Under the pieces are notes generated by a model. That model ran no database searches, was not told the origin of the DNA, and worked only from the letters and a program-made list of their open reading frames with translations. Made by a program: the position numbers and the translations under genes. 64,000 nt of DNA from Vitrella brassicaformis CCMP3155 (Eukaryota > Protista > Chromerida): contig CDMY01000474.1 in the NCBI GenBank assembly GCA_001179505.1, positions 5,581 to 69,580 on the forward strand, written 5' to 3'. Positions 15,665-35,667 of this stretch are shown here, piece by piece. Every line of letters begins with the position of its first letter. Within the stretch, counting starts at the first letter, position 1.

Positions 15665-16354
15665 TCATCTCCACCCCCTCTCAGCCTCCTGCAGCACATA
15701 CTCCGCCACAGCAGCAACATCCTCATCAGTCAACCTCGGACCAAAGGTACACTGCACACACCACACACACACACACACACATGCACGGACGGTGCAGACT
15801 CATATCAACGGCTGGCTCTCGTCCCTCACCCGTGATTTCGGGTTGCAGCTCTCGCCAAATCCGGGCATGTTCGCCACGCCATAGTAGGTCACCTGATAGA
15901 GCTTGTCGACGTCATAGATTTTGTTGCCGATGAGGTCTCCCTTCTTGAGTGTCTTGCCGGCACGAGCCGACGCTATCACATTGCCACCGCCAGCATGGCA
16001 CGCTGCACAGTTGATGTTGAAAACATCCTCACCCCGTGTTGCGCCAATGACCGGGTCGATGGGAAGGCTGGCGAGAGCAACGAGGGCAAAAGGCAGCAAC
16101 ACACTCCGCAGGAGGCTCTGCAAAGGCTGGGTAGCATCGGTTGCAGCGTCGTGTCGTGGCTCAGACGCCTTCAGCAACCCGCTGCCGAGAGATCTCCTGT
16201 CGCTGTGGGACAGGTGGGATGGTCGTTGCGCCGTCTGCTGCAGTCGTGTAAGCGAGGGAGTGAAGGCAGTGAAAGAATGAGTTGTTGAAGAGAAGACGAC
16301 AACTGCGACGACAAGTTGCGTCACCAGCTGGTGGAGACCTCTGAACAGCCGCAT
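15665..16354 (-). CDS. petJ: Cytochrome c6-family protein of the c6A type, nuclear-encoded, with a tripartite (signal + transit + thylakoid) presequence; 2 exons
   Basis: Heme motif CAACH and distal Met in NMPGFG. Intron 15829-15752 (GT..AG, phase 0) joins GESCNPKSR|CTFGPRLTDEDVAAVAEYVLQEAERGWR*; stop at 15665-15667. The presequence has a TAF motif and a second hydrophobic stretch ending VIGA. Confidence 0.92.
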
Positions 16355-31520: not shown

Positions 31521-31914
31521 CTCAACTGAAGCTCGGCTGACGGCAACAGAGCACATCAACGCACCATGGGCCGATGCACCGCCATGCATTCCAGTGCCTC
31601 ACCTGTCGTTTGAGGTCCTCAGCGGCTCGTGGTGCTACTTGTCCGGCCGTAGAGTGCTCTTGCCGGCAGAATGCAATGGCCTGCTCTGCCAAACGTCGGA
31701 TGCAGACACGATAAGCGATGTCAGCAACGTCGAATCCGATGAGAACCGATTTGCTGAGGGGAAACGTTCTGTCGCGAGCATGCAAGCTCGCAAAATGGTC
31801 CGTTTGGGGGTAATGTCCTCGGGTTCCAACGAATGAGTGACTTATCCGCAATCGCATTGATGCATTGCACCCGCTCCATCTACAATCGTCATTGCAAACG
31901 GCCCGCCTGCCTCT

Positions 31915-34493
31915 CTACCCACCGACCGCCGCCCTTAGATCGAACACACGGCCCCTCTCATGCCCCTGCCTCTGTCTCAGATCCAACACACGAGCACTGA
32001 CGTCCTTAGCCACATCCTGCTGCCTCAGATCCAGTGCAGCATCAGCCCCGGAAGGGTCCCCATTGGCAACAAGATAACGCCGGTCCGGCCTCTCGGGCCG
32101 CCTCCCTAGCTGCTGAAACACCTGCAGCTGTGCCAGGATGGCATCCCTCTCCTCCCGCGTCAGATGTGCGCGGCACGAGGGACACACAAGCACGCCGTCG
32201 AGGTGGTCCTGGACCACTGCATCGTCGCCCATGTCGATCTGCAGCTGATCGATGACGTCCTCGTACCACTCAGCGTTGTCCTCTGTCAGCTCAACCAGCT
32301 CGGCTGAGAGAATGGATGACAAGGAACACGAAACAGACGCGCGGATATGTGGATGTGTGGATGTGTGGATGCGTGGATTGGGGTTGCTTACGGTTGTTGC
32401 ATCGGAGGCATCTAGAGAGGGGTCTGTGTGTCCAGTTGAGCCTCAGGTGCTGGTTGATCTCGTTGACATCACCCTCCAGCGTGTTGAAGCGCAGCGACTG
32501 CACCGTCCTGTCAGCCCAGCCATCGACAAATACCTGACACCACAACACACCACAGCAACAACCACAGAGTCGATGAATGGAAAGATGCGTCCATCGTACG
32601 GTCTAACCTGTTTGTATCTGAGGGCCCTGAGTGGCGTGGCTGGGTCGAGTGCGGCGGCGATGCGCCGTGCCATCTCACTCCGCAGCCGATAGGCAAGGGG
32701 AGGCTTCGACAGCACCACACGACGTGACCCTTTCTTGGTTGCCGCATCCAACATGCGCCGGGGACTGATCGATTGATGTCCACACAGCAATGGCACATAC
32801 ACACAGAGGGGAGACACACGTTGCATATCGATGGCACCCACCTTCTGTATGGGTCATCCAGTCTATTGGTGGCCTCGATGACGTCATAGCCGGCAGCACG
32901 CAACCATTTGCCCAGTTCCTGAAAGAAAGACACGAAGCAAATCGGTCGGTCATTCCCCACTCGTCATGACGTGCTAATGTGTACCTCCTTCGCCGCATCT
33001 GCGTCGACCAGTAGCCGCAGACTGTCAGGATTCACACTTGAGGGCGACCGCATCCTCTTCAGCGGCACAAATGGGGGCATCCCCTCGCCAGTCCACTTAT
33101 CGCCCTCGTCACCGTTCCCCCTGCTCGAGTGCAGCATCGCGGCGGTGTCGTAGCTCTGCGCTCCCGGCGGCACCCCCACCAGCATCGCCTCGCCCGTGTC
33201 TTTCTCGGTGAAGAACTCGCCGTGACAGTTGAGCAAGGCCGATGCGGCCTGCCCGTCCGTCAGAGTCAGCTGGGTGAAGGTGCCGTAGCGATCGATGGGC
33301 GCGCCGTCAGACCGCCGCTTGTTCGCCCCCTCTGTGCGTTGCAGCTCAATCGACGTGATGCGCGCCGGATCGACGCCCTTGCTCTCGCAGAAGTCCCTTA
33401 GGTCCATCTCAGTTACCCATGACGGCAGCTTGCCCATGTAGATGCGCGAAGGGGCAGCGGGGAGGGAGGGGAGGGGGGAGGCAGTGTCTGGATGTGAGGA
33501 AAACGGGTCCATTTCTGCCACAAGGTTCCATCTGTGTCTGTAGGGGGCCGTCCGTAGCCGTCTGTCGTCTTGCTCGACCATCATCTGCCCGCTGAGGATC
33601 TCTCTGGCCTGCTTGGCGCTCTCGTGATCGTCAAATCGCAGGTAGCCTCGCCCGATGTGTCGTGTGGAACATGTCCGCGGCAGCCTTATCTCCCGCACTC
33701 CCCGCACCTTGACCAGAGCCAGCCACCCCCTCACGTCGTCCATCAGCGCCTTGAAGGGCAGCCCCACAACAGTCACGGCCGCATCCTCGTCGTGGTATGC
33801 GTCAAGACGGACGGGCTCGGTCGCGTGGGGGAGGACAATCTGGTTGTCGAAGAGCAGCGCCCGCTCCCTCTCGAGCATGGTCGGGAAGTGCAGCAGGGCA
33901 GTGGACGGGGAGAGGGGCGTGACAGAGGTGAGGTTGAGGCCCAGCTCGGTGCGCAAGATTTCGGACAAGGCTTCCTGGGAGTCGGTGTCAGGGAGGCCTG
34001 CTGCAAGGGCCGTGAAGTCATCTCCTTCGCCCCAGAAGAACGGCACACGGGTGCGCTTCATCTGCTCATCAGCAAGGTCCTCAAGCTCTAACTCCTCATC
34101 GCCGATAGCCTCGCTCTCCACGTCGCCCTCCTCGTCAGCCATTTCACCATCACCTTCGCCTTCATCTTGCTGGCGGTCTTCTGTCGGCTCAACGTCCCGC
34201 ATCCGCCGGACCGTCGCCAAGAACTCAGGCAGCGGCTCTTCGTCGCCGTCACCATCGCCCTGCTGCTTCTTCTCCCTGGCAAGCTCCTTCTTCAGCAGAT
34301 CACCCAGCCGTGCCTTTGCCTTCAGCCGAGAGCGCCTGGGGAGTGCTGCCACGCGTGGCTTAGTGGGCAGCAGAGGGGCAGGAAAGATGAATGCCGATGA
34401 GGGGAGGGCAAGGGCGGCAACAGAGAGGACCATCGTCACCGCCAGCGGAAGCGCGAGAGATGTCACCAGCATCTCGACGACGGATCTTCGCAT
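31915..34493 (-). CDS. Plastid-targeted RNA-binding protein: 2-3 RRM domains fused to a Mut7-C RNase domain (PIN-like + Zn ribbon); 5 exons, 757 aa
   Basis: Exons 34493-32985, 32918-32842, 32764-32608, 32533-32392 and 32303-31915 splice in frame (2274 nt). Presequence ...AALALPSSAFIFP; RRMs VTVVGLP...RGYLRF and RIYMGKLP...; Mut7-C motifs LLVDADAAKE|ELGKWLRAAGYD, SRCLRCN and VCPSC. Confidence 0.82.
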
Positions 34494-34680
34494 TCACTCA
34501 TGATCTTGGTAGAACAGCAGCAAAGACAGACCGCAGAGCTCTGGGATGATGGAGAAAGGAAGGGAAGAGCACACAGATCTTTGCAGCTCGCAGTGGATTT
34601 TTTCGAGCTCGCGGTTGAAAAGGCAGATCTCCTTTCCCCCCCTCTTCGCACGGCCGTAGGCGACGTCCCCTCTTCCCCCC

Positions 34681-35667
34681 ATGCAGCAGACGAGGTTGGG
34701 CGTTTGCCTTCTCACCCTCATCTGTGGAGGTCACATGTGCGGCGTCAGCAATGCCGTCACAGCAGCAGCATCAGCAGCTGGATTCGTCCCCCCAACAGCT
34801 CCCCTCATCCGTTCCAGAGGCGCATCTCCCCACAGGCAGCCCGCACGGACGGCGACGAGCGCCATGCCGGAGGCGCTGGGTGCTTTGTCAGGGGTGACCA
34901 ATCTGATGTCAGAGGTGGTGGAGGTGGAGGGCGGCGGCTCGGCCATCCTGAATCTGGACCTGCTCGAGACAGGCATGATCAACTTGGCTATCGCGTGGGT
35001 GCTCTTCTACAACTTCGTGTGGAAGGCCATCGTCAACAATAACAGGAACATCGAGCGCGAGAAGGTCAAGGAGTTCGCAGAAGACGAGAAGGCCGCTGCC
35101 GACGTGGCCAGGGAGATCTACGCACACAACCAGGGCATCGACTCGCTCGACGAGAAGATGCAGCAGCTCAAGACGGCGCTGGCGGCCAAGGGCGGCAAGA
35201 TGGTCGAGACGGCGCGTGAGGACTTCACCACCGCCCTGGACAAGTTCACCGCGAGCGAGGAGGCCAACGTCAAGGAGCACGCCAAGCAGATCGTCACGGC
35301 GCGTGAGGACATCAAAGTGGGCAAGGCGCTTGAGGAGGTGGTCAAGCAGAAGCTGCTGCAGCGGCGGCTGCTCCTCAAGCTGCGGGCCGCGTCGGGCAGC
35401 AAGGAGCTGGACCCCTTCATGGCCTCACTCAACGTGTACGACCCCGGCCTGCCCGACTGGGCCCTGACGAGCAAGTACCTGGGCTTCCACCAGCAGTTCG
35501 CCACGCCGCCGGCCACAGACATTGCCGTCAACGATGTGGTGCTGAGGGCGCTGGCCAAGATGCAGGCCAAGAAGGAGGGAAGGGCGGACGACGAGCAGGT
35601 GCTGCTCAACAAGGCACTCAGGTCCGTCGTCGCCGCAAACGCTTTCGAGAAATCACTCGCTGACTAG
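34681..35667 (+). CDS. atpF: Plastid ATP synthase CF0 subunit b (AtpF), nuclear-encoded, intronless, with presequence and C-terminal extension
   Basis: Signal peptide + AAGFVPP transit motif. LNLDLLETGMINLAIAWVLF matches the AtpF N-terminal/TM signature (cf. cyanobacterial INLDFLEANLFNLAI) and is followed by a long A/E/K-rich helical stalk. Single 328-aa ORF. Confidence 0.8.
   Translation: MQQTRLGVCLLTLICGGHMCGVSNAVTAAASAAGFVPPTAPLIRSRGASPHRQPARTATSAMPEALGALSGVTNLMSEVVEVEGGGSAILNLDLLETGMINLAIAWVLFYNFVWKAIVNNNRNIEREKVKEFAEDEKAAADVAREIYAHNQGIDSLDEKMQQLKTALAAKGGKMVETAREDFTTALDKFTASEEANVKEHAKQIVTAREDIKVGKALEEVVKQKLLQRRLLLKLRAASGSKELDPFMASLNVYDPGLPDWALTSKYLGFHQQFATPPATDIAVNDVVLRALAKMQAKKEGRADDEQVLLNKALRSVVAANAFEKSLAD

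Follow-up and report, generated by a model that had tools for sequence, protein, structure and literature searches.

A five-exon Vitrella gene predicted to combine RRM-like units with a MUT7-C domain behind a plastid-type leader

In the MUT-7/EXD3 proteins of animals, a DEDDy 3'-5' exonuclease is joined to a MUT7-C domain, and MUT7-C works there with another RNA-handling module. By sequence, MUT7-C has been classed as a reduced PIN-like fold, with only the first predicted active-site residue conserved in PF01927 (Matelska et al., PMC5499597). A 2024 study of MUT7-C structure found no significant similarity to PIN and described a TOPRIM-like subdomain and a zinc finger (PMC11347159). Specifically, MUT7-C raises the RNA affinity of MUT-7 and EXD3 6–8 fold, the isolated MUT-7 and EXD3 C-terminal domains (CTDs) were negative controls in RNase assays, an insertion between the Cys pairs of Caenorhabditis elegans MUT-7 is the docking site of MUT-8, and RNA binding was proposed as the ancestral function of MUT7-C (PMC11347159). 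Bacteria carry MUT7-C as a stand-alone protein of ~150–190 residues (PF01927). Here we describe a different arrangement in the chromerid Vitrella brassicaformis CCMP3155, found in a 64,000-nucleotide stretch of contig CDMY01000474.1 (positions 5,581 to 69,580; hereinafter the window, to which all positions without a contig name refer). The gene in question lies at 34493–31915 on the minus strand, as do all of its features given below, and encodes a 757-residue protein in which three RRM-like units appear to precede a MUT7-C domain, behind a leader of predicted plastid type. We give an even chance to the reading that it is a multi-domain RNA-binding protein of the plastid.

The host assembly comprises 72.7 Mb in 1064 contigs with 58% G+C, and the gene is located on contig C474 (CDMY01000474.1). 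A 509-residue open reading frame (ORF; 34493–32964) continues through four short introns, each of which, on the minus strand, runs from GT to an AG preceded by a pyrimidine-rich tract. Exon 1 (32985–34493, residues 1–503) encodes the leader, an acidic stretch and all three RRM-like units, and reaches into MUT7-C as far as its first strand. After intron 1 (32919–32984, 66 nt), exon 2 (32842–32918, residues 504–528) holds the WLRAAGYD motif. After intron 2 (32765–32841, 77 nt), exon 3 (32608–32764, residues 529–581) encodes the RVVLS strand, Pro550 (32703–32701) and a basic helical insert. After intron 3 (32534–32607, 74 nt), exon 4 (32392–32533, residues 582–628) encodes the first zinc pair, Cys623 (32410–32408) and Cys626 (32401–32399). 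After intron 4 (32304–32391, 88 nt), exon 5 (31915–32303, residues 629–757 and stop) encodes a conserved acidic helix of the zinc loop, the second zinc pair, Cys669 (32184–32182) and Cys672 (32175–32173), and a tail of low conservation. Intron 4 also holds a repeated CCACACATCCACA-like motif.

The five exons join to a 2274-nt coding sequence of 757 codons plus a stop at 31917–31915. An MMETSP transcript contains an ORF, marked 'type:complete', for exactly the same protein. Two intron-less cDNA contigs, a JGI record (2439 nt) and a Logan assembly of run ERR558152 (2415 nt), agree with the spliced model at 100% identity, without gaps and over their full length, and cross all four junctions. This comparison sets assembled contigs against joined exons, and the mutual independence of the three transcript sources (MMETSP, JGI and Logan) is uncertain. 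The two contigs, aligned at 100% identity, define the extent of the mRNA (31824–34570), with 5' ends at ~34570 and ~34543 and 3' ends at ~31827 and ~31824. The gene is confirmed as real, five-exon and expressed. An earlier note made from the letters of this DNA had proposed the same four GT-AG introns and the same 757-residue product, and every intron was recovered as it had placed them. The note had further called the protein hidden by splicing; the same splicing is already present in GenBank (CEM15929.1) and UniProt, and the protein would escape only someone working from unannotated DNA.

We searched 1.84 billion representative proteins, including MMETSP and EukProt, exhaustively with phmmer and obtained four matches: the protein itself, Cvel_18177 of Chromera velia (991 residues, E 2.6e-39) and two ~160-residue stand-alone bacterial proteins. 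Cvel_18177 is the sole orthologue found, and the same search returned no apicomplexan or dinoflagellate orthologue. Homologue searches with the 509-residue ORF, or with the full-length alignment of the Vitrella and Chromera proteins, retrieved only the protein itself, and an ESM Atlas feature search gave no usable match. Cvel_18177 has the same elements in the same order: Phe stands directly after a signal peptide, and three RRM-like units come before a MUT7-C domain that has the same two insertions and the same motif losses described below. Unlike the Vitrella protein, with which it shares 30–34% overall identity, it has RRM 2 and RRM 3 set apart by ~150 extra linker residues and ends in a long acidic tail. 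Across the databases searched, RRM and MUT7-C occur together in the two chromerids only, in agreement with the earlier note, whose author had not recognized the architecture.

By profile and by structure prediction, the C-terminal domain is a true MUT7-C. The domain comprises residues 491–697 (32098–33023) and is split by all four introns. The Pfam profile Mut7-C (PF01927/IPR002782) matches residues 499–640 with 31.9 bits in the whole protein, compared with a cut-off of 23.3, and gives 36.0 bits when the C-terminal 278 residues (480–757) are used; the match spans profile positions 6–109 of 146. When the exons are scanned singly with Pfam, only exon 4 gives a Mut7-C match, at a sub-threshold 15.9 bits. 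A six-frame PF01927 search of the genome missed the gene because its exons are too short, and recovered only an EXD3-type locus on contig C255.

The closest sequence relatives of the domain are the bacterial stand-alone proteins (best BLASTP E 8e-13), whose closest named carriers are Gammaproteobacteria, Chlamydiota and Verrucomicrobiota. We aligned the Vitrella and Chromera domains with 58 of these homologues (60 sequences in total). WLRAAGYD (Vitrella residues 508–515), the motif of the small N-terminal α/β subdomain, is invariant in the alignment, with Chromera reading WLRVAGYD. The W..P.SRC..CN motif and the second CxxC are also kept in the chromerid domain, and Cys623, Cys626, Cys669 and Cys672 fall in invariant Cys columns, consistent with a predicted Cys4 zinc ribbon. 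The motifs from which the earlier note had recognized the domain and the leader (LLVDAD...ELGKWLRAAGYD, VVLSKP, SRCLRCN, CPSC and SSA|F) are all present in the protein.

The AlphaFold2 (AF2) model of MUT7-C, built from the 60-sequence alignment, has a predicted local distance difference test score (pLDDT) of 88 and a predicted template-modelling score (pTM) of 0.84. Its top match in VIA-align is the CTD of C. elegans MUT-7 (8Q66_A), with Z of 8.9 and root-mean-square deviation (rmsd) of 4.0 Å over 155 residues; the runners-up are generic CheY/flavodoxin-like receiver folds with Z of 6.6 or below. Foldseek gave no match to this model in the PDB at E ≤ 0.001, and 8Q66 emerged from a profile search of PDB sequences with a weak E value of 0.07. 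The nine ESM Atlas clusters closest to the model consist entirely (100%) of PF01927, with target-normalised template-modelling (TM) scores up to 0.83. Compared with the predicted folds of the bacterial stand-alone proteins, the chromerid domain has TM scores of 0.77–0.83 and rmsd of 2.3–2.6 Å. The assignment of the C-terminus to Mut7-C in the earlier note is borne out by the Pfam score, by 8Q66_A as the best solved match and by the ESM Atlas clusters. Its description of the domain as a PIN-fold ribonuclease is not: a PIN domain is absent from the 50 best VIA-align matches, the one PIN entry in Foldseek (2fe1) has a probability of 0.14 and TM of 0.14, and the structural study of the family reports no significant similarity to PIN and a supporting role in RNA binding (PMC11347159).

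Among the nearest ESM Atlas clusters, MUT7-C occurs stand-alone, as Ub-Mut7C, and joined to an MGMT-type DNA_binding_1 domain, to THUMP or to an exonuclease; none has an RRM as partner. The THUMP (Myxococcota), Ub (Actinomycetota) and MGMT DNA_binding_1 (archaea) fusions resemble the chromerid protein in that MUT7-C is appended to another binding module, but their partner domains are different and all are prokaryotic. MUT-7/EXD3, like the chromerid protein, has a lineage-specific insertion between the Cys pairs. Unlike MUT-7/EXD3, the chromerid protein has no match to the exonuclease profile PF01612 in Pfam.

Two segments of the chromerid domain are absent from the single-domain bacterial proteins. 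The first is a basic helical insert of ~29 residues after the RVVLS strand, with a charge of +6. The second is a longer zinc loop that contains an acidic helix, with a net charge of −13. In the helix (ELTEDNAEWYEDVID), 10 of 15 residues are common to Vitrella and Chromera, a conservation equal to that of the family-defining motifs. Without the zinc-loop insert, the MUT7-C core has an isoelectric point (pI) of 10.3 and a net charge of +12.

Two further differences bear on catalysis. The Asp of the R.LIT.D motif (hereinafter the TRD Asp), which most of the bacterial proteins keep (66% of the 58), corresponds to Pro550 in Vitrella and to Gly in Chromera, and in Vitrella a Lys takes the place of the Glu that precedes this Asp (72% in bacteria). 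The replacement of the TRD Asp had been suspected in the earlier note. In the CP.C..YW.G.H..RM segment after the second CxxC, the bacterial homologues all have W, G and M (100% conservation of each), 58 of 58 keeping the W-G motif; the corresponding residues are L, R and I in Vitrella and A, G and T in Chromera, and the W-x-G-x-H..RM motif is found in neither protein. Taken together with the published MUT7-C biochemistry, the losses of the TRD Asp and of the W-G-H motif make catalysis by the chromerid MUT7-C unlikely.

The same evidence bears on an alternative in which the protein is an active plastid endoribonuclease, its RRMs picking plastid precursors and MUT7-C cleaving them, for example before poly(U) addition. 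The family carries the annotation 'Mut7-C RNAse' and has been placed, on sequence grounds, among the PIN-like folds as a reduced member (PMC5499597), and both chromerids keep the first predicted active-site Asp and two more conserved Asp. The setting would also suit such an enzyme. Specifically, polycistronic precursors in chromerid plastids undergo processing and poly(U) addition through unknown nuclear factors (PMC3894158), the protein has a plastid-type leader, and it is found in photosynthetic chromerids with no apicomplexan match in our search. However, neither species retains the TRD Asp or the W-G-H motif, the PIN fold is not among the structural matches, the sole biochemically tested MUT7-C domains are inactive as nucleases alone (PMC11347159), and the dinoflagellates, which also polyuridylylate, yielded no orthologue. 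We consider an active plastid endoribonuclease doubtful. In chromerid plastids, photosynthesis genes are the favoured targets of both processing and poly(U) addition (PMC3894158). To connect the protein with poly(U)-associated processing or precursor cleavage, as the earlier note did, would be speculation.

The N-terminal two thirds of the protein plausibly consist of three divergent RRM-like domains, preceded by an acidic low-complexity stretch (34050–34262, residues 78–148) with a net charge of −23 and pI of 4.05. RRM_1 (PF00076) reaches 23.9 bits, above its cut-off of 20.7, only when two partial matches (residues 265–304 and 351–373) are added together. RRM-like unit 1 (33798–34049, residues 149–232) has no Pfam match; it is 31% identical to the Chromera protein and adopts a β-α-β-β-α arrangement in a low-confidence AF2 model. 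RRM 2 (33534–33788, residues 236–320) gives a partial RRM_1 match of 18.9 bits alone and has an RNP1-like GRGYLRF. RRM 3 (33171–33455, residues 347–441) gives a partial RRM_1 match of 13.8 bits and has an RNP2-like IYMGKL. The AF2 model of residues 140–482 has a pLDDT of 49.7 and shows three β-α-β-β-α units, the secondary structure of RRM 2 and RRM 3 included. When this model is used in Foldseek, almost all matches are tandem-RRM proteins (HuR, raver1, Sxl, PABP and Prp24) at E values of 4e-6 to 1e-4, those of RRM 3 among them. Read from the sequence, the RNP2 of RRM 3 is good, the RNP1 of RRM 2 is partial, and the other RNP positions are replaced. RNA binding by these units is predicted on the basis of profile matches and models.

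The leader begins with a signal-peptide-like segment (34392–34493, residues 1–34). It has a hydrophobic core, with a maximum Kyte-Doolittle score of 2.25 in a 15-residue window, and ends with SSA, a small-x-small site directly followed by Phe35. The following segment (34263–34391, residues 35–77) is basic and resembles a transit peptide, with 11 K/R and 3 D/E in the 40 residues from Phe35. The leader of the Chromera orthologue likewise has a hydrophobic core and continues with AAG|F. The two leaders are otherwise dissimilar (18–21% identity), yet both place Phe after a small-x-small site. In chromerid plastid proteins, a Phe that immediately follows the cleavage site of the signal peptide is a documented signature, less strict in Vitrella (PMC6668581). 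A signal peptide with Phe at +1, as in the bipartite targeting signals of complex red-derived plastids, is found in both proteins, as the earlier note had proposed for Vitrella. As a control, a cytochrome c6-like ORF in the same window has a leader that ends THS|F. Based on these features, we lean towards plastid targeting of the RRM-MUT7-C protein.

The cytochrome c6-like ORF (15800–16354, minus) has a Ser/Thr/Arg-rich segment and a second hydrophobic stretch after the signal peptide ending THS|F. Its leader is of the three-part type that is typical of lumen proteins.

A location outside the plastid, in the endoplasmic reticulum, the periplastid space, another endomembrane compartment or the extracellular space, with action on RNA or on other ligands, would fit several of the same observations. 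The leader was called by a crude rule of hydrophobicity and cleavage site rather than by a trained predictor, the start codon is uncertain, the protein is absent from the supplementary reference sets of PMC6668581, and the relaxed use of Phe makes it less diagnostic in Vitrella plastid proteins (PMC6668581). On the other hand, both orthologues put Phe exactly after the small-x-small site despite their unrelated leaders, and the Vitrella segment after Phe is basic, acid-poor and transit-peptide-like. We know of no obvious role for multi-RRM proteins in a secretory lumen. We regard a non-plastid location as improbable.

In the reading that we prefer, the protein most likely enters the plastid via the secretory route and would act there as a multi-domain RNA-binding protein, with a layout like that of plant chloroplast ribonucleoproteins (cpRNPs). 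Plant cpRNPs (CP29, CP31 and CP33) have a transit peptide, an acidic domain and two RRMs, and they stabilise and process plastid transcripts. As we predict for the chromerid protein, they are organelle-targeted, and they carry an acidic N-terminal region followed by tandem RRMs. Their RRMs, however, are canonical, they lack MUT7-C, and their transit peptide is a simple one; the likeness that we suggest is one of layout. The basic MUT7-C core and the basic helical insert may form a further RNA-binding surface, and the conserved acidic helix of the zinc loop may be a docking or self-regulating element. A plastid location, RNA binding, a lack of catalysis and a role in stabilising or processing transcripts are all what we infer for this protein.

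The acidic helix also bears on a third alternative, in which the protein is mainly a protein–protein scaffold and its degenerate RRM-like units and MUT7-C insertions bind partners and not RNA, analogous to MUT-7 and MUT-8. The helix is among the best conserved segments of the protein, the insertion at the corresponding place between the Cys pairs of C. elegans MUT-7 binds MUT-8 (PMC11347159), the RRM-like units have degenerate RNP motifs, and no RRM profile matches unit 1. However, the MUT7-C core has a strongly basic character, a good RNP2 survives in RRM 3, and the role proposed as ancestral for MUT7-C is RNA binding. The two roles are also compatible and not mutually exclusive. A protein that is mainly a scaffold seems quite unlikely to us.

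Several points weigh against the reading as a plastid RNA-binding protein without catalysis. The RRM matches are weak and partial, with no profile match in unit 1, the aromatic residues of RNP1 and RNP2 are partly replaced, and the pLDDT of the model is 50. The mature protein as a whole is acidic, with pI of ~4.9. The Asp after strand 1, Asp515 and Asp525 are kept, and a reduced metal site may be present in MUT7-C. The term 'non-catalytic' is extrapolated from animal EXD3-type domains and not from bacterial-type stand-alone MUT7-C. A signal peptide followed by Phe could also route the protein to another endomembrane destination. Finally, the start codon is uncertain, and a start at Met21 would leave a very short signal peptide.

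The start codon differs between models of the gene, being Met1 (34493) here, Met8 (34472) in GenBank and Met21 (34433) in JGI. An out-of-frame upstream ORF of 12 codons and a stop (34463–34501) overlaps the main start codon and is inside both cDNA contigs. Its AUG is at 34501, 8 nt 5' of the proposed start at 34493, and may influence the choice among Met1, Met8 and Met21.

The GenBank/UniProt entry of the gene (CEM15929.1/A0A0G4FNX8; 844 residues) carries automatic names, and neither accession is mentioned in the searchable literature. The entry has the same four introns and is identical to the 757-residue product over residues 8–729. After residue 729, it splices into exons at 31640–30852 (minus). 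Those exons belong to a separate MMETSP transcript ORF (106 residues, no Pfam match). Because both cDNA contigs end at ~31825, before the extra exons, and those exons have their own transcript, the 3' extension of CEM15929.1 probably represents two genes merged into one model; an alternative isoform is the other possibility.

Regarding the origin of the domain, a quick tree with 73 bacterial homologues places the chromerid pair inside a 22-row set that contains 13 Chlamydiota and two Verrucomicrobiota (SH-aLRT 95). The tree has long branches (3.0 for Chromera), its sampling is biased by the search motifs, and it covers bacterial stand-alone sequences without cyanobacterial, archaeal or EXD3-type ones; for these reasons, we draw no donor from it and take the grouping with a Chlamydiota-rich set as a lead only. 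Vitrella has a second MUT7-C gene on contig C255 (195757–198972), with Pfam matches at 197257–197472 and 197618–197746. In this gene, MUT7-C is downstream of a 3'-5' exonuclease-like motif (YAALDA), which is the canonical MUT-7/EXD3 type. A recent duplication of this EXD3-type MUT7-C as the source of the RRM-linked domain was rejected: the C255 exons have no BLASTP similarity to it (E 0.3–1.7), compared with E 8e-13 for the bacterial stand-alone proteins. In a further scenario, which we consider quite unlikely, chromerids took up a stand-alone MUT7-C gene from bacteria, the donor perhaps belonging to the PVC group or the Gammaproteobacteria, and fused it to tandem RRMs and a plastid leader. 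The product would be a lineage-specific plastid RNA-processing enzyme that recognises as well as cleaves photosynthesis-gene precursors, one of the nuclear factors missing from the chromerid poly(U)-linked pathway.

Upstream of the gene is a head-to-head neighbour (34681–35667, plus), with ~110 bp between its ATG and the point where the RRM-MUT7-C transcript begins. The 328-residue ORF of this neighbour has a hydrophobic start that ends AAG|F, a plastid-type leader, and no significant Pfam match.

Hardly any nuclear factor acting on plastid RNA is known from chromerids, which are photosynthetic relatives of the apicomplexan parasites. The gene described here adds to the short list of MUT7-C architectures a new partner, the RRM, and a new predicted compartment. 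It provides an expressed candidate, present in both chromerids, that would bring a plastid-type leader together with two kinds of RNA-binding module; its value is that of a well-defined candidate and not of a demonstrated mechanism.

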